Shown here: positions 19,552 through 39,282 of the stretch, one piece after another
Position numbering within the stretch: position 1 is the first letter of the stretch
Layout: each line of letters opens with the position of its first letter
NCBI GenBank assembly: GCA_025594325.1
Contig: JANHCV010000002.1
Coordinates: 1,736,001 to 1,800,000 of the forward strand
DNA: 64,000 nucleotides
Direction of reading: 5' to 3'
Source: Blastocladiella emersonii ATCC 22665
Taxonomy: Eukaryota; Fungi; Blastocladiomycota
The notes under the pieces: model-generated
What the model saw: the letters and a program-made list of their open reading frames with translations, nothing else
The model's database searches: none
What the model was told of the DNA's origin: nothing
Made by a program: the position numbers and the translations under genes

Positions 19552-20376
19552 GGTCCCTGCGCAAGGATGACACACTGTCTCTTGAGTGGAAGCATCTTCT
19601 AGATGCGAATTTTTTTTTGCATGTGATACTTTTGACCCGGGGGTGCGCTGGGACTTGGTGGTCCAGTGGCCTGCTGGTGACTCCAGCGCACCCTTACCGT
19701 GGTCTGACCGTGCAAATAGCCTCTAGATGCGGTTATATACTCGTTTTAGTCGTCATACTTGACTTGTAAAAGTCGCGGTGACGGCTGACTTGACGAGATA
19801 TGACTGGTCGCGGCGGCTGGAGCATGGCGGCCACGCAGTTTTTTGAGACTCCTTGAACGCTCACCACCACCACGCATCGACGTTGACTCATGCCGCGTGG
19901 TGCGATAACCGTGGCCCCCTTGCTGTTGCTGCGATCCTCGCCCAACGACTTGCACAAACTCGAACTTGAGCTCGGGCGCAGTGGCAGGACAGGTCCGCTG
20001 CCGCTCGCGATAACGCGGTCGCGGCGGCCACTTTCTTCTCCTAGACCGCCTGGATCCACTCGTTTTCATGGCCGTGTCGTGTCCACCACCAACTCGACTA
20101 GACCCTGAAGCGGGACGGCGTGCGGGACGCGTTTCTGCCCCACGAGATCGCTCTTATCGCCCCTTCTTTGATCAAATCGACGGGATCGACAGAATTCAAA
20201 GAGAGTTGCGTTCAACGTGTGGGCGGATGATCAAGGGAATTGGTGGAACCGGCTTGACATCGCGTCGCGTCGCGTCGCACGCGTTTGACATGTGGGTCGC
20301 ACGAATCCAGACCTCCAACTCCCCTCAGTGCGGCCCTGTGCGGAACGGCGCGACATTCCGGGAGTTAACCGACCTC
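19445..20376 (+). repeat. Left copy of a ~940-bp inverted segmental duplication (U6 gene, ~60 bp upstream and ~760 bp downstream flank)
   Basis: Reverse-complement match to 38441-39389 along the whole length, with scattered substitutions and small indels. Confidence 0.95.
19505..19618 (+). ncRNA. U6: U6 spliceosomal snRNA, copy 1 (5' end approximate)
   Basis: AAAATTGGAACGATACAGAGAAGATTAGCATGGTCCCTGCGCAAGGATGACAC: ACAGAGA box at 19535-19541, AGC triad and ISL. Ends in a T9 Pol III terminator. Confidence 0.97.
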
Positions 20377-20389
20377 TTTGAAAGTATCC

Positions 20390-21421
20390 GCGTTCTTGAC
20401 TTGGCTGGCTCCTCTGTATCGCCTACGAGTACTGACGCACAGGCCCCCGCCGCCTCGCGCACAGTCCTCGAGCAGCAGCTTCACCTCGAGATTGAGATCG
20501 AAATCGAGATTGTCACCGCCGCCGCTGTCAAGGTCTCGACCCCCCATCACCTCGGCCTCGGCCAGCAAGAAGGCCAAGCCGCTCAAAACGCCCAAGGACT
20601 CGAAGCGCTTGCTTTACCTTCAACAAGGTCGCGTGCATCGTCACGCGCGCCGACGGTATCGGCCAGGGCGAGGTGTCGAACGGCGCCAAGGCCGCCCGCA
20701 TCGTGCTCGAGACCCCGTCGCACGACCTCGCCAAGGTGCTGACCACGCTCGCCGTGCCCCAGCTCGGCAAGCCTGTCGAAAAGGTCCGCGAGGCCGCTCG
20801 CGGCGTCGGGTCGGTCGACCCCAAGGTACTCGGGTCCGCGGTGGCCAAGGCGCTTGGGAACAACGGGACCACGGCGCACACCGGGATTTACAGTTGGCTT
20901 CGGGCGCCGAGTCGCTGGACGATGCGGTGGTCCAGAAGTGGATTCGTGTTGCCGAGGTAAGTTGCTCTCGCCTCACCTCGTCGCCGTCGATCGCCCGCTA
21001 ACGCTCGATATGCGCGCGTCAATAGCGCTGCCTCCGCTCAAACTCGGATTTCGCGACGCTCGACGCGATCAGCCTCGCGCTTGAGTTCATCGACGCGGAC
21101 AAGGCGTTCACGATGGCGCCGCACGAGCGCCGCGCGCTGAAGCGCATCCTCGCGCTCAACAACATGTGTGGCAAGACCAAGGGCGTCAATATGCCCATCG
21201 AGAACAAGATGGTGGCCGCGGCGTCGGCCCAGTGTACGCTCCGCATGGTGCCGCTCATCGCGCCTGTGCTGGCGACGCTGTGCACGGCCGAGGTCTCGAC
21301 GGTCGAGGGGTCGTACTCCAAGAACGTGGCCATGGCGGTCGAGTTCTTCGGCCGCGTCGAGATGCCCCTGATCGCGCCGGCCCCCGACGCCGTGTTCGAG
21401 GCTGTGGCGGCGCTGATCTGA
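20390..21421 (+). pseudogene. Frameshifted gene of unknown family
   Basis: High-GC3 coding blocks switch frame near 20610 and near 20885. One canonical intron (GTAAGT...AATAG, 20957-21025). The last exon ends ...DAVFEAVAALI*. Confidence 0.5.
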
Positions 21422-23293
21422 GGAGGAGGAGAGGAAGGGTGGGAGCGCGTGTGTGCGCTCCGAGTCGAATGGGTTTCGGTTGTGTTGTGGAAGTATTTGT
21501 ATCGTTCGAACCTAGTGTACTATATCCTTCGCTTCGAGGGCTAAAGCCCTCTTTCTAGACCGGGTCGCTGCCGGATAGGGTGCCGACGCTCACGTGAGCG
21601 CGATCCACGTGAGCGACCCGAAAACGCGTGACAGACGCGTCGTGCGGGGCTTTGCCCAAGCTATAGTGACCGTGATTTTCTGGCTAACGCTCGTCACGTT
21701 ACAGTCACACTTTTCTCAATGACATCACTCCCCGCGTCGCGTTGCGCCACTTCGCTTCGGCTCCCGCTTCCGCCCCGCTCCCCTCCCGTTTGCTCTCCTT
21801 CTTCAATTAAGCTCATTTACTCTATGCAATGGATTCCATAAATCCTGAAATTGACGACACGCCGGTCCTGTCCCACCTCGGCGCCTTTGGGTGGCGCTCG
21901 CACGGCGACGTGCTGTGCTCGACTCGGCCGTTGACTAGAGTGTTCCGCTGGTACCGCCTTTGCACTCTGCTCTTGCTACTGCACAAGTGCTGCTTAGGCG
22001 AGCTCGCTGAGTGGAGTAGCATGTTGTGGGATGCTTTCACGTCGCCACGGCTTGCAGTACCTGCCATTGTGAAGGACCCCAGCTCGGGGCGATGCTATTT
22101 GTGTTCTCGTTCTTCCCCTTGTGTGGGCGCACTCGCTCTTCTTGGCCGCCGCTACCGCTACTACACCCGCGTTGCGCCCGCTAGGCGTCGCTATATGTTG
22201 TTCCGCGCCAAAGGAGGCGAGCTCGCTCAAGCTTTCAAGCTGGATCATAGCGTGCGACGCGAACGCCATCATCGTTGAGTGCTTTCTTGGCGGAAGATCG
22301 ATGCGTTAGTCGAGATCGAGTCGTCGCGCACATTCGCTGTGCATAGTACGCTCCGTTGCTCAATCGCTGACTACTTCCTTTTCGGCTCATTGAGAATATC
22401 AGCATGCTGCTGTGAGCGAGTGGCTCGCCTTGACGCATCTGTCAGAAATCCGATCTCAGTTGCCTCGAGCGCGCTGGCGATGCGCGCTACGTGCGCGTAT
22501 GCTGCATTGAGGCGATGTTGAGAGTAATCGGCGCCCACAATCAAGTCGCGCTAGCGCTCGATCAAAGCCACCATCACTAGAGCCAGTTCGTGTTTGTGCG
22601 CGCTCGATCGCAACTCGCTGCACAAGGAGTCGCTCCCGCAACTTGAACAACGATGCGTTCAGCGACCTTCAGCTATCTCCGCCACGTCCGTAGTCGACTT
22701 GATCCACCTCAAGAGCAGGAAGACGCACAAAAGCGCGAAGAAGGCGTGTTGCGAAGGCCCCAACACGTGGTTCTGACGCGTCGCGTCTCTTCCTTTCGAG
22801 CCCCTTTGAGTAATGCGAGTCAGAAGCATGATCTCAGTCTGCACTACATCTGAAGCGAGTTCCGTGTCTCTCAGTTCACAAATCATGCAGTTCCTTGCAT
22901 CGCGCGTCCACGACGCGTCTGGAGTGCCGTGTGATCGCGGCGAGAGGGCACTTGGGCAAAGCCCCGCACAGTTGACACCCGAACGGAGTGAGTGGTGGAG
23001 GTACTGGCAATTTCTCATGTGACTGCTGTGGCGCAACGCGTCCTGGCCTTGCACGTGATCGGCCTCGGCCCAACCCGCGGAAGCGCCGCGCGGCGCCAAC
23101 CACTCAAGGGCGAGCGGCAGGGCGAGCGGAGCGCGTTGCACCGACTAGCGTGCTTCGCGAGCTTCTGAGTTCAAGAGGATCGGAGCGATGTGAACGTAGG
23201 AGAACGAAAAGTATATCTTTGTGCGGGAGGAAAAAAGAGTCTGCGCGAGTCTGCGCGAGGGGAATGAACAGAGTCGGGGCGGGAGCGAGTGCA

Positions 23294-24286
23294 TCAGGTC
23301 GACGAGGACAGGCGGCCGCTGCGGCGCCGCTTGGGCTGCGCCTCGTGCTCGTCGTTGACGACGCACTCCTCGTGCTCCTCCTCGTGCTCCTCCTCGGCGG
23401 CCGCGGCGGCGGTCGCCGCCGTGCGCTTCGTCGCGTTGGCGGTAGACGTCGGGACACCGGCTTGGTCGTCACCGATGGCGGCGGGCGTGCACGCCGCGAG
23501 CGCCGCGGTTGTCGGAGCCGCAGCTGCGGCCGCGTCGTCCATGTCGCACCCGACCGACACGGAGTTCGAGTCCGGCACCCCCACGACGATCTTGTCGATG
23601 CTGCCGATCGCGATGAACGAGTGCGTCCAAATGGGGTCCGCGCAGCTCGGGAAGCCGCCGTACTTCTTGGTGCCGGTGTTCTTGCCGCCAGCGTTCTTGG
23701 TGTTGGCAGGCGAGTTGATGGCGGGCGACACGACAGCGAGTGGCTGGATCGCGTGCTCCTGCGTCACGGGCGCCGCGGCGGGCGAGACGACGGCGGCCGA
23801 GATGTCGACGGGCTGCTGGATCATGAGCTGCTGCGCCGCGGGTTCCGCGGCAATCGAGGCGGCGACCTGCTGCACACCGTGACCAGCGGCGCCCGATGCG
23901 ACGCCGTTTGCCGTGGCGCGGGCGGCCTGGTGCGCGGCGAGGTTGTTGACAAAGTTCTCGCGGCCGTCGCGCATGCACTCGTGGTACACCTCCGTGGCCT
24001 TGTTGAGCTCGGCCCGCATGCCCTTCATTGTGCGCGGCACGCCTGCCGAGGTGAAGGCCTTGTCGCTGGGGAAGCCCGGGTCGTTGTTGGATTCTGACGA
24101 GTCCGACGCGTTCACGTCGCAGTGGAATCGCGGCCGCGGCGGTGCCGTCAGCGTCGCGCGAGCCGGACCCGTGCTTGGCGTTGTCGGGGTTGGCGGCCCC
24201 GTGTACTTGGGCTCCTGCGGCTGCGTGTACTGCGCGGCGGACCGGGCGACGCGCGTGGCCGGCGGCCTCCACGACGGCGTCATCAA
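23294..24286 (-). CDS. Cargo-like ORF inside the Helitron, antisense to RepHel; unknown product (Ala-rich, acidic tail, PKRRR NLS-like end)
   Basis: 330-aa ORF with strongly GC3-biased codons on the minus strand (e.g. RAELNKATEVYHECMRDGRENFVNNL). It abuts the truncated Rep sequence head-to-head. Confidence 0.55.
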   Translation of the reverse strand: MMTPSWRPPATRVARSAAQYTQPQEPKYTGPPTPTTPSTGPARATLTAPPRPRFHCDVNASDSSESNNDPGFPSDKAFTSAGVPRTMKGMRAELNKATEVYHECMRDGRENFVNNLAAHQAARATANGVASGAAGHGVQQVAASIAAEPAAQQLMIQQPVDISAAVVSPAAAPVTQEHAIQPLAVVSPAINSPANTKNAGGKNTGTKKYGGFPSCADPIWTHSFIAIGSIDKIVVGVPDSNSVSVGCDMDDAAAAAAPTTAALAACTPAAIGDDQAGVPTSTANATKRTAATAAAAAEEEHEEEHEECVVNDEHEAQPKRRRSGRLSSST

Positions 24287-24917
24287 GGTCGCGACCCGGC
24301 CCGGCGACGAGGCGCGCCTTGAAGATGTCCTTGGCGGCCTTGTACGCGTAGACCCACGCGAGCCGATGATGATTCACTCGAACATGGACGCACGGTTCCT
24401 CACGTCTTTCGACAAGTCCATTGTCGAGTTCTACGCGACCAAGTACTCAACCAAGGCGCGCGACATCATCGAGAACCACGCCGCCATCATCGCCGCGTAC
24501 AAGGCGCAGCACCAGCGCTTTGACGCCGAGCCCAACGCCTTCTCGCGCGGGCACAAGAAGCTCCTCTCGCTCGCGTACCACATGTCGGCGAACTGCATGG
24601 AGGTCCCCGAGACCATGGCCGCCCTGTTCCTGCACACGTCGGCCGCGGGCATCTTCTCGCACAAGTTTGCGCCGCTGCTGCTCTACCAGGGCATCAAGTG
24701 GGTCGAGCTCGCGGGCGTCGCTGCCGGCGAGGCGACCAACGAGGACGTCGAGTGCATCGCGTTGCTAATCAACGTCAACGGCAAGCCCATGCTAAACGTC
24801 GCGCTTCACGACTACATCTTCCGGCCCGCCGAACTCGAGCGGCTGTCGTGGTACGACTTTGTCCGCACGTGGTCGCGCGTCGCCATGCCCAAGGAAATGC
24901 GCCAGGTCCTGGCCGAC

Positions 24918-25091
24918 TGTAAGGTGCCGAGGGGGAGGGTCTTGTGCCACGAGGAATGACTAGCCGGATAATGAAGGATTGTATCACGAATGACAAGAGA
25001 GAGGGAGAGCGAGGGCAACGCTCGGCTTATGAGGGACTGCGCCACCAGCCCGCGCCACCAGCCCGAGCCGTCGGATCACTGAACCGTGACA
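24918..25091 (-). mobile_element. Solo LTR (174 bp) of the same Ty3/gypsy family
   Basis: Reverse complement of the LTRs at 27839 and 32956, TG...CA ends, and a 5-bp TSD CCGAC (24913-24917 and 25092-25096). Confidence 0.97.
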
Positions 25092-28065
25092 CCGACAGCG
25101 GCCGTGTGGAACCCGCTCAACCAGACCTCGAACCCGGCACCAAGATCCAGCCCGGCACAAAGTTCTGCTTCATGGCCGACCATCCGCTCGCCAAGCCGTT
25201 CGAGCTGCACAAAAAGGACGTCGAGGCCGTGCCCAAAATTGCTGGTCCGCACCTCCCTGACCTGCGCAAGTTTGCCGACGTCGCTGGGTCTGAGGAAAAG
25301 TACTGCCGCATGGCGCTACTGCTTCTCCAGCACTTCCGCGTCTCGAGCGACATCCTCGACGCGCAGGGCTCCGCGATCGGCAAGTTCAAGGCGTTCAAGG
25401 AGACGCTCGAACCTGGCCACGCCGCGCTCGACCATCACGAGTACGCGCAGGAGTACTACTTCAGCCTTGACGGCGCTCGCGAGTTCCGCGAGCTTCGCGA
25501 TCGCGAGAACGCCGAGCTCGCGGCGCAGCTGTCGCATGAGGAGAAGGGGAAGCTCTACGTTCCTGACCGCGACAGCGAAACCAGCTCACGCAACCAGCCG
25601 ACTACCGATGACGGCTCTGTAGCCGCTTTGTGGACCATGTTTGGTCAGTCGGAGAACGACATTGTTCTTGACCCGACTATTGTCAACTCGGACGTGGAGG
25701 GCATCCTGGCCGACAATGGCGAAACCGAGGGCGAACCTCAAACGCATAGAGGGCCTGACCTCTACGCTGATCCCTGGAATGGGCCACGGCATGATGGGCA
25801 CCCTGCTCTTCCCCGACGTGCAGCCGTTCGATGTCAACGCCGCCCCGCCGCTGCCGTACCTCGAGACGCCCATCTCGCCAACTGACGCCAAGAAAATCAT
25901 GGCTCAACTATGCGCTGCCGCGGCTCAAGGTCATCTGACTGCGGATGTCGGCGCCGTACCTGTCGTTTCCGGGCCCAGGCAGCCACCCATGATTGGTATT
26001 GTTCCCGCAGTGCCATCTGGAGCCTCGACAAACACATCTCAGCATGGTATCGACCCGGAAATGGCCGCCGACGTGCCCAAACCAGAACTCGGACCAGCCG
26101 TCAACGTTTGGCGCAGCGCCTTCACGACCACGCCAACAGGTCCTGACGCGCGCGCGGTTCCTCGTCACCAAGGCCGCGCACTCAATCAGCAACTTTGCCT
26201 ACGACACACGCGGCGACGAGTGGAGCGACGAGAAGCAGTGCACTGTGCACACGCCCGCATACGCAAGCCTCGCGCAGGTCTCGCTCAAGTTCAACCTCAA
26301 CAAAGAGCAGCACCGCGCGTTCGTGCTCTTCCTCATGCCGCTCATCGACACCTTCATCAGCGGCAACGCGGGTATTGCAGACGCTGCGCCCTTGGCCGAG
26401 CAGAACGTGATCCTGTTGGGCTGCAACAACGTCCAACATGTTGTTGGCACCGCGGCCCTCCGGCCCTTGAGCAAGGACCGGACGCCAATCATCCTCACCA
26501 GCTCGGGCGGCACGGGCAAGTCACGCGTTGTCAATGCAATCCGATACTTTCTCGCGTCCTGGAACCGGGAAAAGTGCCTCATGGTCATGGCCATGACTGG
26601 GATCGCGGCTGCCAACATTGGCAGTACGACCATCCACGCCGCGTTCTCTTTCTCGCTAAGGCCGAAAGAAAGCAGCGTACCGATCCTGCGGTTGCCATCG
26701 CGTGGAAAGGGCGTCTCGGCGTCGTCACCAACGAGTTCTCCATGTGTGACGCGACTTTACTCGGCCGTATCGACGCGAACATGCGCCTCCTGCGGCGGTG
26801 CGACGAACCATTTGGCGGGTGCATCGTCATGCTCGCTGGCGATCATCTACAGCTGCCTCCCGTCAATGGAGCTGCCCTGTACAAGTGCCCGCTGTCCTCA
26901 ACAACGCGCCAGACTCGTTCTACCTGCGCATGACGTCAAATCAATTGACGGTCCCCGAGCACCTGGATCGAGGCCAGGTCGCGTACTGGCGCACTACACG
27001 CACTGTTCGTCTTGTGAAGAGCAACCGATTTGTCGACGATCCACCATGGGGCAACGAAATGGACGCGCTCCGCCTTGTCAAGGCGTCGGACACGCTGCGC
27101 GACCTGATCAACTCGCGTACGACCGCTCAGCTTCAGCAGCAGGTCGACGAAAACAGCAACAACGTCCTCAAGGAGATCCTCAAGAAGCCCGGACTCACGG
27201 TTATCACGCCTGACAACCACACGCGCCACGCCTTCAACCTGCTCTACACGCGGCTCGCAGCAGCAAACCCAAACCGCATTGTGTTCCAGATCAAGGGCAA
27301 CATCACGCGCCCGCGTGATAGGCGCCGCACGCGTGAACGCGTCGCCATCTGCGACAAGGACGTGTTCCGCCTCGGAGGAGAGCCAGAAACCACGACTGAA
27401 CTGCCAGCCATCCTTGAGTTCTGCGTCGGAATGGAGATGCGCGTCAAGACCAACCAGTGCGTAGCAAAGGGGTGCGCGAACGGTGCGGTTGGCGTTGTGC
27501 ACCACATCGGCTGGAAGCCCGAGACCACGTTCATGCGAACCGCGTCCAACATGTACCAGCCATCCTGCGCTCCACTCAACGTGTGGATCGACCTGCCCAA
27601 CGCTCCTTGTGGCCCTCGCTTCCCGGGCATGCCGGCCGCGTGGCCTGACACAGTCATCCCGCTTGCCGTGGAGAAGAAGGACTTCCTGTACATGGTGGGC
27701 GGTTCCACGTTGCAAGAGCGAGTTGTCAGCACAACGGGGGATTCGCTTCCGCTCTGTGTCAACAACACCAAGACCAACAGGAGCAAGTATCCTAATCATG
27801 TCGTTGCGCACATCGAGCAGTACCCGATGGTACCAGCCTGTCACGGTTCAGTGATCCAACGGCTTGGGCTGGTGGCGCGGGCTGGTGGCGCAGTCCCTCA
27901 TAAGCCGAGCGTTGCCCTCGCTCTCCCTCTCTCTTGTCATTCGTGATACAATCCTTCATTATCCGGCTAGTCATTCCTCGTGGCACAAGACCCTCCCCCT
28001 CGGCACCTTACACTTTGTATCACCGTAAAACCCCCTCCGAGCGGTGATTTCTTCCACGACGGCAA

Positions 28066-29143
28066 AATGATAACGCCGGCACAGTTCCTCGAAAAGCTGG
28101 CGACGTTTGACGTTGCGGCCATTGTCCCCGAGTACCAGCTCGCGCCGTGGCGCGACCTGGTCATGCCGTACGAGGACAAAGCCAAGCTCGTCTTCCTCGC
28201 GCTCAACGTCGCCAGCGACTACTGGCAACTGGGCGTGTCGACCGAGGCCCGCGCGGTCGCGGCCGAGCGGCGCGCCGAGACGGCGGAGCGCCGCGCGTAT
28301 GCGCTCGAGGTCGAGCTGCGTCAGACGCAGCAGAGCCAGCCGCTCAACGGTATCCTGCAGGGCGAGCTCGACAGCATCCAGGTCAGCAGCGCGCGCGGGC
28401 CGGGCGTGGGCGTTGATGGCTTCACGCCGGCCGCGATGCACGCGCTGATGCGCATGAATTCGGTTGACGGCGTCAACTTCAAGGTCAAGAGCGCCATCAC
28501 GCAGTACGAGAGCATCCTCCAGCTCACGTTCAACGTCCCGGAGAAGTTCAAGATTGCGCACTTCCACGGCAAGCTGACAGGCAAGGTGCTCAAGGCCGTG
28601 GAGCTGGCGATGGCCGGGTCCAAGTTTGAGGACTACGGCTCGTTCAACGCCTACATCTCCCTCGTCAAGTCAACGCAGCCGGCCGAGAAGTCGGAGACCG
28701 AGTACGCGCACGAGCTCAAGAACCTCAAGTACGTGCGCGGCGCCATGCCGGCGCGCGATTTCGTCTCCAAGTTCCGCCAGACCGCGTCCGGTGCAGGCTA
28801 CCGCGCGCTCAGCGAGCTGGCGATGCAGTTCTACCTGGTGGTCACGGCCGGCAACTCGCCGCTGGCCGCGGACGTGGCCTTCGCCTCGCTGCGCAAGGGC
28901 TACCGTTTCGACAAGATGGTCGAGCACTTCCTGGTGCACGAGGGCGGGGCGACGGGCGTCGCGGCCGAGCTCGTCCCGGACCCGGACGCCATGGACGTTG
29001 GCGCGATTCGGCAGCGGGCGGCGGCGCACCAGGGCCGCGCCCTCACCGACATCAAGTGCTACAACTGCAAGGGCTACGGCCACAAGGCGGCTGATTGCCC
29101 GTCGCCCCCGCGCTCGTCGTCGGGAAACGCCAGTCGGGCGTAG
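28066..29143 (+). CDS. gag: Gag with CCHC zinc knuckle
   Basis: Open frame with CYNCKGYGHKAADC and the typical DAMDVG motif before the knuckle. First ATG at about 28066. Confidence 0.9.
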
Positions 29144-32100
29144 CGGAGCAGGCCGCGACGTCCTCGAAGCCAAAACCTGCGGATTTGGGTGGTACAACGG
29201 CGATGGCCACGGCGGCCGCCGCCGCGGATAAGATGTCGGTGCCCGCCGACAAGAAGAAAAAAATGAACAAAAAGAAGAAACAAAACATGAATGATAAGAA
29301 GACTAATGGAAAATCTGTTGCTGCGTACTTTGGTGCACTTGTGCGTCTAGAGATGGCGCAGGACCACCAGCACCTCGGCGGGCTCCTCGCGCATCCAGGG
29401 CTCCGCACGGCGCCGATCCCGACGTTCATGATGCTCGACACGGGCGCGCCGGTTAACCTGATCAGCCGCAGGGTGGCCGAGCAGGCCGGGCTCGTGCCGA
29501 AGCGCCTAGCGCGTCGCATCGACCTCCGCGGTGTCGTCGGTTCCGCGCCGGGCCAGCGCCAGTACATCTCGCATTACGTGCACGCGGCCGTGTCCGTCAC
29601 GTCGCCCGAGTTCCTGCACGCGGCGGTCGCGGGATCCCAAACCGTGTTCGCGGACGGCGTCGTGCCTCCCGGCGACGCGTCCAAGCAGAAGCGCGTGGTG
29701 GGAGACGCGGGTCGCGCCATCGACATTCCGTGCCTTCATTGCTCGGTCGCGCGCTTCCTCGTCGTCGACTCTCCCGCGTTTCCGGTGATCATGGGACTCG
29801 AATGGATGGTCGCGAACGGCGCGAAGCCGGATCCGCGCTCGGCCACGGTCGCGATTGACGGCGCGTGCACTGGTCGCTGCGGGTGCCCGCCCGCCCAGCG
29901 CGTCACGGTGGCCACGGTCGCACCGCGCGTCGACCTCGACCCGCTCGCGTGGGACGAGGCACACGGCCCGCCCGAGGCGCCAGATGACGCGGCGCCGAAG
30001 CGCGTGCTGCCCGCCAAGTACCTCAAGTGGGCGCACGTCTTCGATGCCGCCGCGGCGTCCGCGCTCCCGCCGCACCGACCGTACGACTGCGAGATCGAGC
30101 TCGTCGAGGGCGCCAAGGTGCCGTTCCTGCCCGTCTACGCCCTGTCGCAGCCCGAACTCGAGGAGCTGCGCAAGACCATCGACGAGAACCTCGCGCGCGG
30201 CTTCATCCGCCCATCGCGGTCGCCAGCCGGCGCGCCGATCATGTTCGTGCCCAAGAAGGACGGGTCGCGCCGCATGTGTGTGGACTACCGCCGCCTCAAC
30301 GCGCTGACGGTCAAGAACCGCTACGCGCTGCCGCTCATCGCGGAGCTCATGAACCAAGTGCAGGGCGCGCGCATCTTCACCAAGTTCGACCTGCGCGGCG
30401 CGTACAACCTGGTCCGCATCCGCGAGGGCGACGAGTGGAAGACGGCGTTCCGCACGCGCTACGGACATTATGAATGGATGGTGATGCCGTTCGGGCTGAC
30501 CAACGCGCCGGCCGCGTTCCAGGCGTTTGTCAACGACGTGTTCCGCGACCTGCTCGACCGCCGCGGCGTTCTCGTGTACCTGGACGACATCCTCATCTTC
30601 AGCGAGGACCCCGAAGAGCACACGGCGCTCGTCAAGGAGGTGCTGCAGCGGCTCGCCGACAACAAGCTGTACGTCAAGCTCGAGAAGTGCGAATTCGACG
30701 TGACGCGCGTCGAGTACCTCGGCCACATCCTGACCACCGAGGGCGTCGAGATGGACCCGGCCAAGGTCCGCGCCGTGACCGAGTGGCCCGCGCCACGGAC
30801 GGTCAAGGAGGTGCAGGCGTTCCTGGGCCTCGCCAACTACTACCGCCGCTTCATCCCCGAGTTCTCGGAACTGACCATCCCGCTCACCCGTCTTACGCAG
30901 AAGGACACGCCGTGGCGGTGGGGCGACACCGAGGCGGCGGCCTTTGCGGCCATCAAGACGCGGTTCGCGTCCGACCAGTTCCTCGCGCACCCCGACCCCT
31001 CAAAACAGTTCATTGTCGAGGCCGACGCGTCCAACTTCGCCATTGGGTGCGTCCTGTCGCAGGTCGACAACGAGGGCACGCTGCGGCCGGTCGCGTTCCA
31101 CTCGCGCGCGCTCAAGGCGGCGGAGCTGAATTATCCCATCTTGGATAAGGAGCTGCTCGCCATCAAGGTCGCGTTCGAGATCTGGCGCCACCACCTCGAG
31201 GGCGCGCAGCACCCGGTCGAGGTGTACACGGACCACAAGAACCTCGAGCACTTTCGCACCATGACGGTCGAGTCGCAGCGGCACGCGCGGTGGGCACTGT
31301 TCCTCGAGCGGTTTTCGTTCCGGTTCACGTACCGGCCCGGCGCAATCAACGGGCGCGCCGACGCGCTGTCGCGCCGCGCCGACTACGAGCTGTTTGACAA
31401 CCCGATGCTCGGCCGCGCTGTCGTTCCCGCGTCGGCGCTCACGGTGGCCGCCACGGCCGCGGCCAGCGCGCCGCTCGTCGCGGGCACGCAGGGCGACGAC
31501 GTGCTCGCCGCGATTCGGGACGGCCTGGCGGAGGACGAGCTCGCGCAGTCGATGCAGCGGAACTCGGGCAAGCACCCGTCGCTCACCATGGACCTCGACG
31601 GCTTCGTTTGGCGAGACGACCGGCTGTACGTACCGTCAGGCGTCGCGCGCACCCGGGTGATCGAGGAGGCGCACGCGACGCGTGTAGCCGGTCATTTCGG
31701 CGTCCAGCGCACCATCGAGAAGGTGTCGCGCTCGTACTGGTGGCCCGGGATGCGCAAGGTGATCGAGCGGTTCGTCAAGTCGTGCCTCACCTGCGCGCGG
31801 GCCAAGGTGCCGCGCCACCGGCCTGACGGCGAGCTGCAGCCGCTGCCCACGCCGCCGCGGCCATGGTCGTCGATCTCCATGGACTTCATCACGGACCTGC
31901 CGCGCAGCAAGGGTCACACCTGCATCATGGTCGTCGTCGATCGGTTCTCCAAGATGACGCACTTCATCCCGCTCGCCGCGCTCCCAACGGCCGCCACGAC
32001 CGCCGACGCCTTCATCGAGCACGTGGTGCGGCCGCACGGGCTGCCCGACGACATCGTCTCGGACCGCGGGTCGCAGTTCACGTCGCGGTTCTGGTCGGCC

Positions 32101-32955
32101 ATGTGCGAGTCGCTTGAGATCAAGGCCAAGCTCTCGACGGCGTACCACCCGCAGACCGACGGGCAGACCGAGCGCATGAACCAGACCCTCGAGGTGTACC
32201 TGCGCATGTTCGCCAACGAGGACCAGTCGAACTGGGCCGAGCTGCTGCGGTACGCCGAGATGGCCATCAACAACACGGTCAACGAGTCAACGGGCATGTC
32301 GCCGTTCAAGGCCAACTACGCGTTTGACCCGCGGCTCTCGGCCGCGCCAGTTCGGTCGGATCGGGTCCCGTCAGCCGCCGCGCTGGCCGAGCGCATTGCC
32401 GACGTCCAGGGCAAGCTGCGCGAGAAGGTCGAGCGCGCCAAGGAGCTGTACAAGAAGCACGCTGACCGCCGCTGCCGCGAGGGCCCCGACTACAAGGTCG
32501 GCGACATGGTGCTGCTGAGCACCAAGAACCTGCGCGTCAACGTGCCCAAGGCCAAGCTCGGGCCCAAGTACACGGAGCCGCTCAAGATCGTGCGCCTCAT
32601 CCGGAAATCGGCCGTCGAGCTCGAGCTGCCGCCGACCATGGCGCGCGTCCATCCCGTGTTCCACGTCTCGCTCATCAAGCCGATCGACGAGCACGACGAG
32701 GAGGCGTTCCCGGGCCGCGCGCTGCCGCCGCCAACGCCGTACGCCGTCAACGGGCACGAGGAGTGGACGGTCGAGGCGATCCGCGACGCGCGCAAGGTCG
32801 GCCGCAGCGTCGAGTACCTGCTCAAGTGGCACGGCTGCCCCGAGGACGACAACACCTGGGAGCCGTACGCGAACCTCAAGCACCTCGAGCTGCTCGCCGA
32901 GTTCCACGCGCAGAACCCGTCAAAACCCGACCCGCGGAGGGGGAAGGGGAGATAG
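29122..32955 (+). CDS. pol: Pol (protease-RT-RNase H-integrase-chromodomain), expressed by a probable -1 frameshift
   Basis: LDTGA protease, YLDDILIFS RT, EADAS...DHKNL RNase H, HHCC plus DDE integrase, and chromodomain EEWTVEAI...YLLKWHG...NTWEP. The frame is -1 relative to gag, with G GGA AAC at 29122-29128. Confidence 0.95.
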   Translation, partial: GKRQSGVAEQAATSSKPKPADLGGTTAMATAAAAADKMSVPADKKKKMNKKKKQNMNDKKTNGKSVAAYFGALVRLEMAQDHQHLGGLLAHPGLRTAPIPTFMMLDTGAPVNLISRRVAEQAGLVPKRLARRIDLRGVVGSAPGQRQYISHYVHAAVSVTSPEFLHAAVAGSQTVFADGVVPPGDASKQKRVVGDAGRAIDIPCLHCSVARFLVVDSPAFPVIMGLEWMVANGAKPDPRSATVAIDGACTGRCGCPPAQRVTVATVAPRVDLDPLAWDEAHGPPEAPDDAAPKRVLPAKYLKWAHVFDAAAASALPPHRPYDCEIELVEGAKVPFLPVYALSQPELEELRKTIDENLARGFIRPSRSPAGAPIMFVPKKDGSRRMCVDYRRLNALTVKNRYALPLIAELMNQVQGARIFTKFDLRGAYNLVRIREGDEWKTAFRTRYGHYEWMVMPFGLTNAPAAFQAFVNDVFRDLLDRRGVLVYLDDILIFSEDPEEHTALVKEVLQRLADNKLYVKLEKCEFDVTRVEYLGHILTTEGVEMDPAKVRAVTEWPAPRTVKEVQAFLGLANYYRRFIPEFSELTIPLTRLTQKDTPWRWGDTEAAAFAAIKTRFASDQFLAHPDPSKQFIVEADASNFAIGCVLSQVDNEGTLRPVAFHSRALKAAELNYPILDKELLAIKVAFEIWRHHLEGAQHPVEVYTDHKNLEHFRTMTVESQRHARWALFLERFSFRFTYRPGAINGRADALSRRADYELFDNPMLGRAVVPASALTVAATAAASAPLVAGTQGDDVLAAIRDGLAEDELAQSMQRNSGKHPSLTMDLDGFVWRDDRLYVPSGVARTRVIEEAHATRVAGHFGVQRTIEKVSRSYWWPGMRKVIERFVKSCLTCARAKVPRHRPDGELQPLPTPPRPWSSISMDFITDLPRSKGHTCIMVVVDRFSKMTHFIPLAALPTAATTADAFIEHVVRPHGLPDDIVSDRGSQFTSRFWSAMCESLEIKAKLSTAYHPQTDGQTERMNQTLEVYLRMFANEDQSNWAELLRYAEMAINNTVNESTGMSPFKANYAFDPRLSAAPVRSDRVPSAAALAERIADVQGKLREKVERAKELYKKHADRRCREGPDYKVGDMVLLSTKNLRVNVPKAKLGPKYTEPLKIVRLIRKSAVELELPPTMARVHPVFHVSLIKPIDEHDEEAFPGRALPPPTPYAVNGHEEWTVEAIRDARKVGRSVEYLLKWHGCPEDDNTWEPYANLKHLELLAEFHAQNPSKPDPRRGKGR

Positions 32956-34834
32956 TGTCACGGTTCAGTGATCCGACGGCTCGGGCTGGTGGCGCGGGCT
33001 GGTGGCGCAGTCCCTCATAAGCCGAGCGTTGCCCTCGCTCTCCCTCTCTCTTGTCATTCGTGATACAATCCTTCATTATCCGGCTAGTCATTCCTCGTGG
33101 CACAAGACTCTCCCCCTCGGCACCTTACACAGCCTTTGCCATGACGGTCCACGGGGTTCAAGGCGTGACCAAGAACGCCATCGCCCTGGCAGATCCGCTT
33201 CCCACGGGCATGGAGCGTCTCATCAGCGGCGCTTCCCTGTACGTGGCGTTATCGCGGCTTTGTCGCTCAAAGTACCTGTGGGTGCTTCAGCCGATCCCAA
33301 GAGCCGTGCTCAAGTCCATGAAGCCGGATCCACTCGCAGTGGCCGAGGACAAGCGGCTCCAGATGCTCGATGAGCTGACCAAGACCGCTTTCGATCAAGG
33401 TACAGCCATTGTGCCAGGCGACCCGCGCATCGCCAAGCTCTTCGACGACGCGATTCCCTTCTCAGGCCAGCACGCGGCTGATAAGCTAGTCGCCAAGCGC
33501 GCGTCAGATGCTCTCAACGCAAGGTTTCGGCGATTGGCCAACAAACGTGCTGGAGGCGAGGATGGCTCACAGAACGCCAAGAAACAGAAAACACAGTAGA
33601 GTATTAACGTAGTGTATTCCATCATCCAATCCATCAATAGCACGATTTCCATAGCTCGATCACCTAAATCTCCTGTGCGGGATGCACGCGACAGCACCTC
33701 CACCACTCGTGCACCATACGTGGCGGGGGCTTTAGCCCTCGATTGAAAACCAAACGCGAAGCGTTTAGGTGCCTCAAGTATAATGCTGGGCTCAACCCCA
33801 GTGGTCTTCCCGAAAAAATGAAGCCCACGTGACCTGAACTTTTTCACGGTCACCCCTCTCAGCAACCGATCACTTGACCCCACCTGAGGCTCGATTTCCA
33901 CCTCGCCTGACCGTGAAGTCGTTGAGCACGGGCCGCGCGTTGCTCATATCCATCTTATAGAAAACCCGGTCGTTCCTAAACATGAAGCAACGCTGACGCA
34001 GTCTAATGAAGAACACCGGGACGCGGCAAGGCGCGCGAAGCGCGCAGAATGAACTGAAGCTCGGGTCGCTGATGGCAAGACGGCGGCTCGTGTGTGGCAC
34101 CAGCGCTGGGGGAGCAACTGCTTGTCGGCACGAGTGCTGCCATCGCTGGACGTCTCCGTTGTTCCTGAGCTTGAGCGACTGAGAGCTGTCGATGGGAAGG
34201 ATGAACCTTGACGTGAGTTGCTGCGCGCACCGCCTGTCGATACACGCTCTTCGCACCGGCTACTACCCGCATGTGAGTCTAACTGCTTGCCTCGCAGAAG
34301 TGCTGCGAGTTCCATGCGTGGCTGAAGGATCGCTTGCACTTGGGCTTGTGAAGCAGAGGCGGAGGGCCGCGACGATCATGCTCGGCAGCCGCCAACACCC
34401 GCCTGGTCACTCGAGCGGGGTGTGATCGTGATTTCGTCGCCTCTCCTGCGGGGCGCAACGCCGATCAGCGTGCTCGTCGCGCCGCGCGGAGTTTCGCGGG
34501 CCTGCTGCCCCTGATCGCCACCGCGAACCTGGCCGAGTCCTTCCCGCCCCCGCTGCCCACGCTCGAGCAGACGGACCAGCTGGTCCGCGAAGCGGAATAG
34601 CGGTTTCGCGTCGATTCTGACGGCCATGTGGTGGGACTCGTCACCAGTTGCTTGTGTGGGGCTCCGACGCGGCACACGCCTGTCTCGAGCAGCTGGAAGC
34701 GTGCTACGGCATTTGGTCGCGGTCGGCGGTTTGCTAGGCTCGCCGGCTCTTGCCTCGCGTTCCGCGCCATGGACGGCGTGCCCGCCGTCGCCATCTTGAA
34801 GAAGGCGCTAGTTTTCCCCCAAAAAGGCGCTTGG

Positions 34835-34878
34835 GAAGCACCCAACTCAGTGCAGAAGCACCCAACTCAGTGCAGAAG
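34835..34878. repeat. 20-bp tandem duplication GAAGCACCCAACTCAGTGCA x2
   Basis: Exact adjacent duplication, visible in the sequence. Confidence 0.85.
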
Positions 34879-35459
34879 TCGCCCATGGTCGCGATCGTGG
34901 ACGGTGTTCGCGTCAGGCTCGCCCTGGATGACGACGCAACGTCGCTCAAACTCATCGCCATCGCACTCGAGCAGACGCGCGGCAATTTCGGGGTCAACCG
35001 CAACGGGCGCAACGCGGTCCCCCGCTCCAACTTCCCGCATTGTAACGGCGAGCAGACCATCGCGGCCGCGTTGATCTCTGTGAACGTGACCGAATCGGGA
35101 GCCTTACAGGCCATCGTCGCTGGTCTCTTCACGCCGCTGAGCTTTTGCTGCGCACGCGCTACCCTTGCAACGCGTTCAGGATTCGTGAGCTTGTCGTCTT
35201 CGCAGCCATGTCACGCTGTCCAGCGTCACTACGCTTCACTTGGTAAACCGACGCGCTGAGCACGTTATACTTGCTCTGCTTGCTGTCACGCGACGCGCGT
35301 GAAGCTCGACCCACGCGCGCGCGCGCCGCTGATCTCCGCGTGATCCCCAACGCTGCGGACACGGCCGTCCGCGCCCGACCGCCGCCGGTGACTCGCCGCC
35401 CATTTCCCTGTCGCCCTCAAAAGGCGGCCGCACCCCCGCCGCGGACGTGAGCTCTCTTT

Positions 35460-35582
35460 AAGCTCACGTTCCGTTATCACTAGGTTAGTGCGGCCCCTTT
35501 ACCTTTCCTTTCCCTCTTGTTTCCCCCTCGTTTTGTTCCCCTCATTCCTCTGTAATCGAAGCTCACGTTCCGTTATCACTAG
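35460..35582. repeat. 24-bp direct repeat AAGCTCACGTTCCGTTATCACTAG at 35460-35483 and 35559-35582, flanking a pyrimidine-rich spacer
   Basis: Two exact copies 99 bp apart. Confidence 0.85.
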
Positions 35583-35747
35583 TTGTACCGGTCTACGTAC
35601 ACGGGCTTCCTGCCTAGAACGCCGTTCCCCCCACGGCGCTCTTTATTGCTCAATATGATCGCTTCTCTGATCCCTCACTAATCGCGCGTATTTCTTTCCA
35701 ACTACGACACCGCAGAGTATGTATCTTTCATTGACGCGCTGAAGGGC

Positions 35748-35797
35748 TGAGTTGAGTTGAGTTGAGGTTGAGTTGAGGTTGAGTTGAGGTTGAGTTG
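35748..35797. repeat. Compound microsatellite (TGAGT/TGAGGT)n
   Basis: tgagttgagttgagttgaggttgagttgaggttgagttgaggttgagttg. Confidence 0.85.
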
Positions 35798-36561
35798 GGT
35801 GGGGGAGAGGGTGGGGGAGGGTGGGGTTGAAAGCCCAGCACGGAGGGGAGCAGTTCCTAACGCTACCGGTCGCCAATTGCTTTCAACTTGACTCTCTCGC
35901 CCGTTCTCCGCGATCGGGAAGCGGCTCATGTCGGCCGCCCCTAGAGCGGGCAAAGACGCGTCGCGAAATGGCGTGACCGGCGCCAGTGGCTGAAACGCGA
36001 GCCGCGAGACACTTTCCCTCCCTCCCGCTTCGCCCACGCTCCCACATCCCACGCGTCCCTGCCGACGCGGATGCAAGCAAATGGAAGCCAACTGGATGCA
36101 ATGCGCAGCGCGCCACAACGGCCACGCGAAGCTCCGCGAAAGCGGACCCTGCCTTCGCGTCGGCACCCCGATGGCCGCGAGCGCGACTGGATCTAGCGCA
36201 GCGGCTCGAGCGGGCCTCGAGATTGCACCGCGTGTCCCTGCCGCCCCTTCGGGAAGGTAGAGTCTAACTCCATACGCCAGCTGGCGCACGGAGCTAGACT
36301 CCGGATGGCGAGGGAGCCAAGTTGCGCGCGTGGCCGCGATCAGGATCGCTCCGCTGCCGCACCGAAACTGGAGCTGCCCGCTAGATCACTCGGCAGCGCG
36401 TCCCTTCCATTGACGTGACGCCGGCGGGATCCACTCTCGATCAGCAACGGAGCCAGGCTGCGCCCCGCGTCCTTCTCGCCGCCTTCCTCGCTGGATCTCG
36501 AGCTGCACGACCGCCGCTGCTCGCTGCTCGCCCTCTCCGCCCTCACCGTCCCCGGCCCGCC

Positions 36562-36569
36562 CATAAATA
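36562..36569 (+). promoter_or_regulatory. TATA-like box upstream of the Tyr/Gly/Asp repeat gene
   Basis: CATAAATA embedded in GC-rich DNA about 150 bp before a ttcaccATG start, followed by a CT-rich leader. Confidence 0.45.
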
Positions 36570-36715
36570 CCGGCCGCCGCCCCGCATCCCTCCCTCTCGA
36601 TTCGACAGCGAGTACCTCCCAGTCCTCTCTCCCCTTGCACCCTTGCACACCTCCGCCTGCGCCTTCGGTCGCACAGCCTCCCCTCCTCTCCCCACCACCC
36701 ACCCCCTCCTTCACC

Positions 36716-37213
36716 ATGACTGGCTACGGCTACGGCGACGACTCGTACGGCAGCTACGACTCGGGCTACTACGGTGACGACTTGTACGGCAGCTACGACT
36801 CGGGCTACTACGGCGACGACTCGAAGGGCTACGACTCGGGCTATTACGGCGACGACTCGTACGGCTACGACTCTGGGTACTACGGCGACGACTCGAAGGG
36901 TTACGACTCGGGCTGCTACGGCGACGACTCGTACGGCTCCTACGACTCGGGCTACTACGGTGACGACTCGTACGGTGGCTACGACTCGGGCTACTACGGC
37001 GACGATTCGTACGGCGGCTACGACTCCGGGTACTACGGCGACGACTCCAAGGGCTATGACTCGGGCTACTACGGCGACGACTCGGGCTACGGTGGCTACG
37101 ATTCCGGGTACTACGGAGATGACTCTGGTTACGGTGGCTACGACTCCGGCTACTACGGCAACGATTCGTACGGCAGCTACGACTCGGGCTACTACGGCGA
37201 CGGCTGCTGCTAA
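36716..37213 (+). CDS. 165-aa Tyr/Gly/Asp/Ser tandem-repeat protein (12 x YGDDS-x1-3-GYDSGY) ending in GCC*
   Basis: Intact ORF, good Kozak context, and repeats differing mostly at synonymous positions. No signal peptide. Confidence 0.85.
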   Translation: MTGYGYGDDSYGSYDSGYYGDDLYGSYDSGYYGDDSKGYDSGYYGDDSYGYDSGYYGDDSKGYDSGCYGDDSYGSYDSGYYGDDSYGGYDSGYYGDDSYGGYDSGYYGDDSKGYDSGYYGDDSGYGGYDSGYYGDDSGYGGYDSGYYGNDSYGSYDSGYYGDGCC

Positions 37214-37399
37214 GCCGCTCCCTTTGCTCTTCCGCTCCTTGTTCGTTTGTCGATTCTCCCTCCCCTCTCGTTGTTCTCTTGCCCTCTCGCCCTAGCTCCT
37301 GTCGCCTATCGCCGCCTGTCGGTAATATAGCTGCGGTTGAGTCTTCTTCATCTCGTTTCTCTCGCGTTTGTGCTAGAGTTAGTTGGTTGATAGGCGTTG

Positions 37400-38354
37400 T
37401 TGAGTCGCTTGAGCTTGCCCAGAATCGCGATTGCAGCCCTTGTCTCGGCCACGGTCATGCTTGTTTCCGACTTTGCGTCCCGGTCGTTTTTTTTTTTAAC
37501 GCGAGTTTGGTTTGAGAGCCTCGAAGCGCGACGTTCGCGGCCTCATCTCGTTGACGCGAGTCGAGCGTCTGCTCTCTCAGCCCGGTCTTGGCTCGGGATT
37601 GCTCTTGCTCATCCTTTCTCGCGCGTAACGCGCATCTCGCTTGTCAATTGCAACATGACTCTCGCTCGCGTCCACATGCTCCGCCTCCCCAACTCTGACT
37701 CTGTCTTGCACCTGGACCTGTCTGATAACCCGCTGGGCGAAACGGGCGTACGGGAGGCCGATCCCAAGGGCCCAGAGCCGATCCGACAAAACAAGCGGTG
37801 CGTCCGCGAGGGCAACACTGCCAACTGCGACGGCTCGTGCTATCCGAACTTGTCAGCCCGCCAGCGCCACGAGCAGCAAATTGACGCGCAACTCGCGTTG
37901 AATGACAATACCAGCTACGGTCTTGGGAACTGGCTCCCTCCCGCTCTCATCAGCCATCGACATGATCAGCATGTGTTTCGAGCGCGCGTTCCACTACCTT
38001 GTTGCGCATCTTCCGCCTCAACTCGAGTTGCTGGACATTTCGCGCTGGATTCTCAAACGTCGAGGTTTGTGGGCGCTCACGCAGCACGAACTTCCGCAGT
38101 CTTTGACTCAAGTGACAATTTTTGTTCGGTATGACGACGACAATGCCTTCATGCTTGCTCTTGTTCACAAGCTTCCCATGGCGCTCCACGTTGTCAACCG
38201 CCACGATCCGACATTTGAATGGATTGGTACGGGCGGCCTGGCTGGTCCCGAATGGGCTTTTGGTGACGACACAGCAGATGACGCCGACGACCAATATGGT
38301 GGTGAGCATTACGGTTTAGAGTACTGGGAGATCGAGGAGCTTGAACAGCTCTAG
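37400..38354 (+). pseudogene. Degenerate RNI-like LRR gene fragment
   Basis: LRR-like segments (VTRISLVNCNM, VLHLDLSDNPLG, LPPQLELLDISR, LPQSLTQVTI) are split across two frames, with lower GC than host genes. Confidence 0.5.
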
Positions 38355-38440
38355 TGCACGAAGCGTTAAGCATTTGTTATGTCTCAAAGTTTGAATTTAA
38401 TTCACATGGTTGACCTCTTTCTGATCGGATCATTTTTGAG

Positions 38441-39282
38441 GAGATCGGCTAACTCCCGGAATGTCGCGCCGTTCCGCACAGGGCCGCCCTGAGGCGAGTT
38501 GGAGAACTGGATTCGTGCGACCCACATGTCAAACGCGTCGTCAACGTCACGCGTGTGGCGCGATGCGACGCGATGTGAAGCCGGTTCCACCAATTCCCTT
38601 GATCATCCGCCCACACGTTGAACGCAACTCTCTTCGAATACTGTCGATCCCGTCGATTTAATCAAAGAAAGGGCGATAAGAGCGATCTCGTGGGGCAGAA
38701 ACGCGTCCCGCCGTCCCGCTTCAGGGTCTAGTCGAGTTGATGGTGAACATGGCCGGCCATGAAAACGAGTCGTCGAGGCGGTCAAGGAGAAAAAAGTGTC
38801 CACCACGACCGCGTTATCGCGAGCGGCAGTGGACCTGTCCTGCCTCTGCGCCCAAGCTCAAGTTCGAGTTTGTGCAAGTCGTTGGGCGAGGATTGCAGCA
38901 ACAGCAAGGGGGGCCACGGTGATCGGACCACGCGGCATGAAGCGATGTCGATGCGCGGAAGTGATGGGATGAGCGTTCGAGGTGTTTCAGGGAGGTGAGT
39001 GCGACCACGCTCCGGCCGCCGCGACCAGTCGTCTCTCGTCGAGTCAGCGGAAAATGCGACTTTTGGTAAGTCAAGTATGACGACTAAAATGAGTATATAA
39101 CCGCATTTAGAGGCTATTTGCACGGTCAAGCCACGGTAAGGGTGCGCTGGAGTTACCAGCAGGCCACTGGACCGCTGAGTCCCGGCGCACCCCCGGGTCA
39201 AAAGTATCACATACAAAAAAAAATTCGCATCTAGAAGATGCTTCCACTCAAGAGACAGTGTGTCATCCTTAGTGCAGGGACC

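Follow-up and report, generated by a model that had tools for sequence, protein, structure and literature searches.

To our knowledge, the known proteins rich in tyrosine and glycine fall into two groups: condensate formers, which are uncharged, and secreted matrices, which are neutral to basic and become cross-linked. The systems closest to the protein described here are the FUS/EWS/TAF15-type domains, the cross-linked Tyr-rich precursors such as trematode eggshell proteins, resilin and the coccidian oocyst-wall proteins, and the hydrophilins together with the LEA proteins. The hydrophilins are defined by a Gly content above 6% and a hydrophilicity index above 1, and form a compositional class rather than a homology family.

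The locus analyzed in this work lies in a stretch of 64,000 nucleotides (hereafter the window) from contig JANHCV010000002.1 of Blastocladiella emersonii ATCC 22665, and encodes a Tyr/Gly/Asp/Ser repeat protein of 165 aa, which we call the Y-repeat protein. Like the FUS/EWS/TAF15-type domains, it lacks a signal peptide, is predicted to be disordered and is rich in Gly and Ser, with regularly spaced Tyr residues and [GS]Y[GS] motifs. However, there is no homology between them, and the window protein has roughly twice their Tyr density, 22% Asp and a net charge of -33, while FUS-type domains carry almost no charge and are rich in Gln, such that it departs from the low content of charged residues used as a criterion for them. 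Furthermore, unlike FUS-type proteins, it consists of the repeat alone and lacks an RNA-binding domain. Its likeness to the trematode eggshell proteins, resilin and the coccidian oocyst-wall proteins lies in the Tyr/Gly-rich tandem repeats and the presence of Lys or His as nucleophiles, and extends to the multi-copy genes, the variable number of repeats and the tyrosinase repertoire of the genome. In contrast, these cross-linked precursors are secreted with a signal peptide and are neutral to basic, while the Y-repeat protein lacks one and is strongly acidic, and no homology to them was detected. Like the hydrophilins and LEA proteins, it has more than 6% Gly, a hydrophilicity index above 1, predicted disorder and a cytosolic location by default; yet LEA proteins have few aromatic residues and possess motifs of their own, and no LEA or dehydrin Pfam match was obtained for the Y-repeat protein.

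Organization of the gene and its repeat array

The coding region comprises the following features:

36716..37213 (+): coding sequence of the Tyr/Gly/Asp/Ser repeat protein, a member of the short, CC-type subfamily; single exon, 165 aa plus TAA
36730..37202 (+): in-frame tandem array with a 39-bp period and 12.3 copies (TRF score 568, 82% matches)

The ORF opens with an ATG in the context caccATGa, and its translation begins with MTGYGYGDDS and terminates in YYGDGCC. Tyr and Gly contribute 46 residues each (27.9% and 28%), followed by 36 Asp (22%), 27 Ser, 3 Lys and 3 Cys, with Y, G, D and S together accounting for 94% of all residues. The 36 Asp and 3 Lys amount to 24% charged residues, Gln is absent and Asn occurs once; the net charge of -33 corresponds to about -0.2 per residue, and the GRAVY score is -1.38. 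The motif [GS]Y[GS] occurs 10 times and the pair YY 11 times. At the protein level the array resolves into 12 units of 12-14 residues each, encoded by units of 36, 39 or 42 bp, every one of these lengths being divisible by three. The N-terminus is acidic and lacks a hydrophobic segment, implying the absence of a signal peptide, and no in-frame ATG lies upstream of the start, which in every typical copy reads MTGYGYG(D/G/S)DS. There is likewise no membrane segment in the 165-aa product.

An earlier note on this DNA, made from the letters alone, had described an intact gene with 46 Tyr and without a signal peptide, and both the 165 codons plus TAA at 36716-37213 (+) and the missing N-terminal hydrophobic segment bear this out. 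Its count of 12 repeats stands if units with L, N or C as variants are counted, but the literal expression YGDDS.{1,3}GYDSGY in which it was cast matches only 7 of them.

A multi-locus gene family

A census of the window's own genome (32.65 Mb, 21 contigs) recovered 13 loci on five contigs, 10 of which are intact (101-509 aa) and 3 broken, so that the gene in the window is not unique. Nine of the intact genes are typical members, encoding proteins of 101, 115, 165, 243, 265 (two identical genes in an inverted pair), 289, 339 and 509 aa. The tenth is a diverged, Ala-rich paralog of 354 aa, which at 55-62% identity keeps the GYG start, the SGYYGD core, in the form (D/E)SGYYGD, and the penultimate Cys, and ends in GGCA. 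The broken copies comprise one with a TAG at codon 10 (C21:227744-228226), one with a frameshifted tail and one that is truncated.

All typical copies start with MTGYGYG and end with GYYGDGC followed by one residue, and the 6 to about 41 units between these termini share the core Y-(D/E)-S-G-Y-Y-G-D-D-S. Tyr makes up 25-29% of the family's residues at strictly conserved positions, and Asp 22-25%. Two subfamilies can be distinguished among them. The short, Y-type copies of 101, 115 and 165 aa, the last being that of the window, end in Cys-Cys. The long, K-type copies have units of the form YYGDDSKGYDSG and end in Cys-His; most of their units contain one Lys, and His appears in the last units. 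The window protein shows all the hallmarks of the family, namely the MTGYGYG start, core units of the form YDSGYYGDDS, the GYYGDGC-x end and the conserved TATA box and leader described below. Its closest relative by blastn is the copy at C11:1581082-1581387, with 88-89% identity. The 509-aa paralog (C16:2447818-2449347) has the same start, unit core and association with a partner gene, and 79% DNA identity to the window copy across -843 to +478. This paralog, however, is of the K-type, with 12-residue units bearing one Lys each and a Cys-His end, whereas the window copy has mostly 13-14-residue units, 3 Lys, a Cys-Cys end and a cassette split by transposons.

At the C-terminus the endings are GCC in 3 intact copies, GCH in 6, GCA in 1 and GCS in 1 broken copy; thus, the penultimate Cys alone is conserved family-wide. 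The earlier note had drawn attention to the terminal Cys-Cys as a potential lipidation signal. Given the Cys-His end of the six long copies and the Cys-Ala end of the diverged paralog, such a signal is not a conserved feature of the family but a trait of one subfamily, and prenylation of a Cys-Cys end was rejected as a family trait since this end is limited to the three short intact copies. When the family was checked against the criteria of a Cys at -4 for CaaX boxes and of CC/CXC ends for Rab proteins, neither a CaaX box nor a GTPase domain was found. The conserved penultimate Cys most likely has an end-specific role, such as a disulfide, a metal ligand or S-acylation, with no prenylation signal.

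The two identical 265-aa genes, at C1:1350847-1351644 (-) and 1355740-1356537 (+), form an inverted pair with partner remnants between them; judged by sequence, this pair is a recent inverted duplication or the outcome of gene conversion.

Evidence for protein-coding function

The DNA of this region is about 65% GC, dozens of ORFs overlap in it, and the array can also be read without a stop in frame +2. Hence, ORF length alone is no evidence for coding here, and the coding status is instead derived from the pattern across codon positions, GC3 and the conservation across paralogs. In the window gene GC3 is 0.89 as against 0.49 for GC1 and 0.46 for GC2, and in the typical intact paralogs it is 0.89-0.98 as against about 0.45-0.50 for the first two positions. 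Comparison of the unit cores of the window gene (10-codon cores from 11 internal units) with their consensus revealed 18 synonymous versus 3 non-synonymous differences, which agrees with the claim, made previously from the array itself, that the codon differences are mostly synonymous and reflect selection on the protein. Across the family the corresponding counts are 204 and 57, giving a crude omega of about 0.07; these counts are inflated because units duplicated by concerted evolution are not independent events, though their direction is clear. Among 35 distinct variants of the 36-nt unit in the family, the third position varies in 12 of the 12 codons, the first in 4 and the second in 5, and synonymous states are enriched in these units (observed 13:13 versus possible 22:86; Fisher p = 7e-5). 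The unit lengths found in the family (36, 39, 42 and 45 nt) are all multiples of three, and the alignable ends of the coding sequences are 89-92% identical between copies, as against 50-80% for the flanks.

These observations bear on the alternative that there is no independent gene at this position, the array being either a non-expressed minisatellite that resembles coding DNA or a 3' exon of the upstream partner gene (see below). The openness of frame +2 across the array is compatible with a minisatellite, but a neutral one would not be expected to show the third-position variation, the GC3 values and the omega of about 0.07. In addition, a conserved ATG, a TATA box and a leader free of ATG belong to the array itself, which argues against both forms of this alternative, and we regard it as improbable. 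Thus, on the evidence of codon usage and paralog conservation, the ORF at 36716-37213 is a genuine single-exon protein-coding gene of B. emersonii ATCC 22665.

A two-gene cassette split by a transposon island

Examination of the surroundings of the other copies showed that homology between them extends upstream into a partner ORF on the same strand, which ends about 1 kb before the ATG. The partner ORF is 469 aa long at C21:597896-599302, and paralogs of it are found directly upstream of nearly every Y-repeat copy. Alignment of the whole cassette against the window placed the region from -1934 to -839 at 20436-21524 and that from -843 onward at 35880-37590. From these breakpoints (-839, -843) it follows that the cassette spacer has been split 840 bp upstream of the ATG by a 14.35-kb insertion. 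The resulting arrangement is as follows:

20436..21524 (+): upstream half of the cassette, comprising the partner's C-terminal portion (coding to 21418) and some 100 bp of spacer
about 21525..35879 (no strand): transposon island of 14.35 kb in the cassette spacer; breakpoints located to within a few bases
35877..37590 (+): downstream half of the cassette, with the spacer from -840, the coding sequence and about 375 bp of 3' flank; delimited by blastn against the paralogous loci
36260..36301 (no strand): palindrome of 42 bp in the spacer, with CAGCTG at its centre; at -456 from the ATG
36563..36715 (+): conserved core promoter and 5' leader; TATA box ATAAATA at 36563-36569, leader free of ATG

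The partner remnant at 20559-21418 represents only the C-terminal part of the protein and has a change of frame near 20885-20903. The island contains a chromovirus pol ORF (29095-32952), whose product has RT, RNase H, integrase and chromo domains. Its stretch from 33800 to 35876 consists of dispersed repeats, present in more than 40 copies in the genome. The insertion leaves 840 bp of promoter and spacer intact. The description of the gene as stranded among decayed elements is therefore half right: it is one half of a two-gene cassette, the halves of which were separated by a transposon island, and the locus offers a clean example of such an island dividing a duplicated two-gene cassette. Within the island, an older dispersed repeat (33800-35284 and 35646-35876) is interrupted at 35284-35644 by an element of roughly 360 bp, which resembles a young SINE or MITE and has many genome-wide copies at 92-97% identity. 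An inverted duplication with 87% identity (38427-39200 and 19633-20390) flanks the entire split cassette.

In the retained spacer the TATA box ATAAATA is situated 153 bp before the ATG (-153), with no ATG in between. Six copies have the TATA box at -153 to -157, others have near variants at the aligned position, and the diverged Ala-rich paralog retains the TATA-like GATAAAAG there. An alignment of 11 copies indicates that the best conserved non-coding segment runs from the TATA box through the leader; hence, the TATA-like box pointed out in the earlier note corresponds to a conserved element at 36563-36569. The CAGCTG-centred palindrome has counterparts with 4-9 mismatches, located at -453 to -542, in five further cassettes; it is missing from the C1 and C18a copies, and may be a regulatory site.

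Searches with the partner protein recovered eight "hypothetical proteins" of B. emersonii ATCC 22665 at NCBI, all with H9P43 locus tags, and it showed no match in Pfam and no sequence or profile match in the PDB. A profile comparison using hhalign with four genuine RasGEF domains from the same genome gave a probability of 74% and E = 2.9e-5 over just 51 columns. A scan of the genome with PF00617 did not match the partner and found no PF00617 gene adjoining the Y-repeat copies, and an AlphaFold model built from 7 paralogs was unusable (pLDDT 35). The partner might thus be called RasGEF-like, though weakly so. In the C16 cassette a RhoGAP-like segment with a GIFRVP motif (L030:5887-6792, -) lies upstream of the partner; its Pfam E-value of 0.0023 falls short of the cut-off, and it has been merged into the gene model H9P43_004633.

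Treatment in the public annotation

The assembly was published as 21 contigs, and its account of the annotation methods lists gene-prediction programs alone and names no transcript evidence (PMC9730499). Exact look-up of nine of the intact Y-repeat proteins in a collection of 15 billion proteins, which includes the proteome of this species, returned none of them, and none of these nine is annotated by NCBI. An EST paper on B. emersonii makes no mention of such a protein. The sole trace of the family met in the annotation is H9P43_007063 (630 aa), in which the C-terminus of a partner is joined to the array of the broken copy C21:227744-228226. Taken at face value, this model would favor the reading of the array as a 3' exon of the partner. 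However, its splice acceptor is the AG of the premature TAG at codon 10 of that copy (C21, about 227745-227774), and for this reason H9P43_007063 is probably an artefactual fusion. The same reading also conflicts with the partner ORF having its own stop about 1 kb upstream in all other copies, and with the distance of 15 kb between the two halves of the cassette in the window. The model H9P43_002521 (752 aa), which joins an unrelated upstream ORF (18001-19120) to the degenerate partner remnant (20625-21418), is probably a chimera as well. A practical result of this analysis is therefore the correction of one or two public gene models.

Search for relatives and structural predictions

No Pfam-A family matched the 165-aa protein even at E <= 10. 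Neither the window protein nor the diverged paralog retrieved anything in word-index protein searches; given that the same search does retrieve B. emersonii proteins deposited at NCBI, these blanks are meaningful. The ESM Atlas yielded no usable match. A HMMER search of 1.84 billion cluster representatives returned 20 matches at E <= 0.001 (best E = 1.6e-14), of which the 11 inspected, including the five best, proved to be unrelated repeats with different unit sequences. A degenerate DNA pattern for YDSGYYGDDS recovered 18 single matches in metagenome contigs, all attributable to chance, with reading frames interrupted by stops; nearly all of them are copies of one recurring sequence. A search of the literature for the motif strings and for tyrosine-rich Blastocladiella proteins uncovered nothing relevant. 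The earlier note had recognized no named family and had proposed a pattern search: the Pfam, word-index, HMMER, ESM Atlas and literature searches agree with it on the first point, and the pattern search, as run on metagenome contigs, produced chance matches only. The family thus appears so far to be restricted to B. emersonii, where "species-specific" is to be understood as not found so far, the DNA of other Blastocladiomycota lying outside the scope of the search.

AlphaFold2 run on the single sequence predicted no secondary structure, with a mean pLDDT of 39, which is weak evidence for disorder. The 165-aa product is accordingly predicted to be fully disordered. A beta-solenoid or RTX-like fold was considered and rejected, as the AlphaFold model has no strands and Pfam is blank; the RTX beta-roll in particular was set aside, with the nonapeptide GGxGxDxUx being absent and the period being 12-14 residues. 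The protein also lacks an EF-hand or any other defined metal site.

Possible functions of the Y-repeat proteins

The explanation that best accounts for these observations is that the locus is a genuine gene whose product is a bulk, material-forming polyanion, and we assign this a probability of roughly 0.5. As to how such a product would work, we tentatively suggest, at odds a little short of even, that it acts in bulk as a material-forming polyanion that either self-associates through Tyr or can be cross-linked. This proposal draws on the spacing of Tyr and Asp, the Lys, His and penultimate Cys residues, the lack of a targeting signal and the expansion of both gene copies and repeat number. 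The regularly spaced Tyr would serve as association points (pi-stacking "stickers"), while the Asp/Ser spacers would hold the protein in solution until it is neutralized by Ca2+, polyamines, basic proteins or other cations, or is acted on by an oxidase.

Two mechanisms, to which we attach about equal weight, can be envisaged. The protein could form a cytoplasmic gel or condensate that is switched by cations; its high net negative charge disfavors self-condensation without counter-ions. Alternatively, its Tyr residues could undergo oxidative cross-linking by a tyrosinase or peroxidase in the style of quinone tanning, for example in the thick, melanised resistant sporangium, with the Lys of most long-type units and the terminal His/Cys potentially supplying the nucleophiles. 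Lys-based cross-linking in the window copy itself is disfavored by its having 3 Lys only. In the genome there are at least 12 loci with a tyrosinase domain (PF00264), with 17 matches in total (for example C11:1913907-1914479). These tyrosinase-domain loci favor the material-forming role, as does the precedent of trematode eggshells, where quinone tanning of Tyr-rich precursors via Lys and His is established (PMC3656142). In a 33-Mb genome they represent a sizeable repertoire. None of these genes adjoins any Y-repeat copy, the nearest being 141 kb away. Since the protein has no signal peptide, a role in the wall or extracellular matrix is disfavored unless it leaves the cell by an unconventional route. 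The wall scaffold, Ca2+ granule, membrane-anchored hydrogel and condensate named in the earlier note are all candidate functions, among which the present observations give no preference.

The same composition could suit a protectant of the hydrophilin or LEA kind, which, in the dormant resistant sporangium, would protect the cytoplasm from drying or osmotic stress by vitrification or molecular shielding without building any structure. With 28% Gly and a hydrophilicity index of 1.38 the window protein falls within the hydrophilin definition on both counts, its predicted disorder and missing targeting signal fit, and many copies of variable length would suit a stoichiometric demand. Nevertheless, the LEA proteins and hydrophilins typically contain few aromatic residues, as opposed to the 25-29% Tyr at strictly conserved positions seen here, and no LEA or dehydrin motif is shared, Pfam being blank; we consider this role unlikely.

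The resistant sporangia of B. emersonii are melanised, and this, along with the many tyrosinase-domain loci, could also be reconciled with the protein being a store of tyrosine for melanin or wall synthesis, or else a buffer of low affinity and high capacity for Ca2+ or other metals, that is then degraded or kept in the cytoplasm. Its 28% Tyr and 22% Asp, in an Asp/Ser context that would maintain solubility, are in keeping with such a use. However, storage by itself would leave the strict unit sequence, the MTGYGYG start and the conservation of the penultimate Cys unexplained, and neither an EF-hand nor any other defined metal site speaks for a buffer, such that this possibility seems less probable still than a protectant.

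Returning to the bulk, material-forming polyanion, its most specific version would be a cytoplasmic protein with 25-29% Tyr that is kept soluble by Asp and is set by Ca2+ or polycations, or by tyrosinase, into a gel or a melanin-protein composite. The setting would be timed, for example, to the construction of the resistant sporangium or cyst. In this detail the proposal is speculative and unlikely to hold in full, but if true it would define a new class of intracellularly made, Tyr-based structural material without homologs elsewhere.

Implications

If expressed, the Y-repeat proteins would constitute a family of 13 loci, of unusual composition, almost wholly absent from the reference annotation of a fungus that is emerging as a model. 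As the known Tyr/Gly-rich proteins are either uncharged or secreted and neutral to basic, the Y-repeat proteins would also provide a natural test of what happens when extreme charge and extreme aromatic content are combined in one disordered protein. Finally, the family could point to the protein chemistry of the resting structures of the blastoclads.
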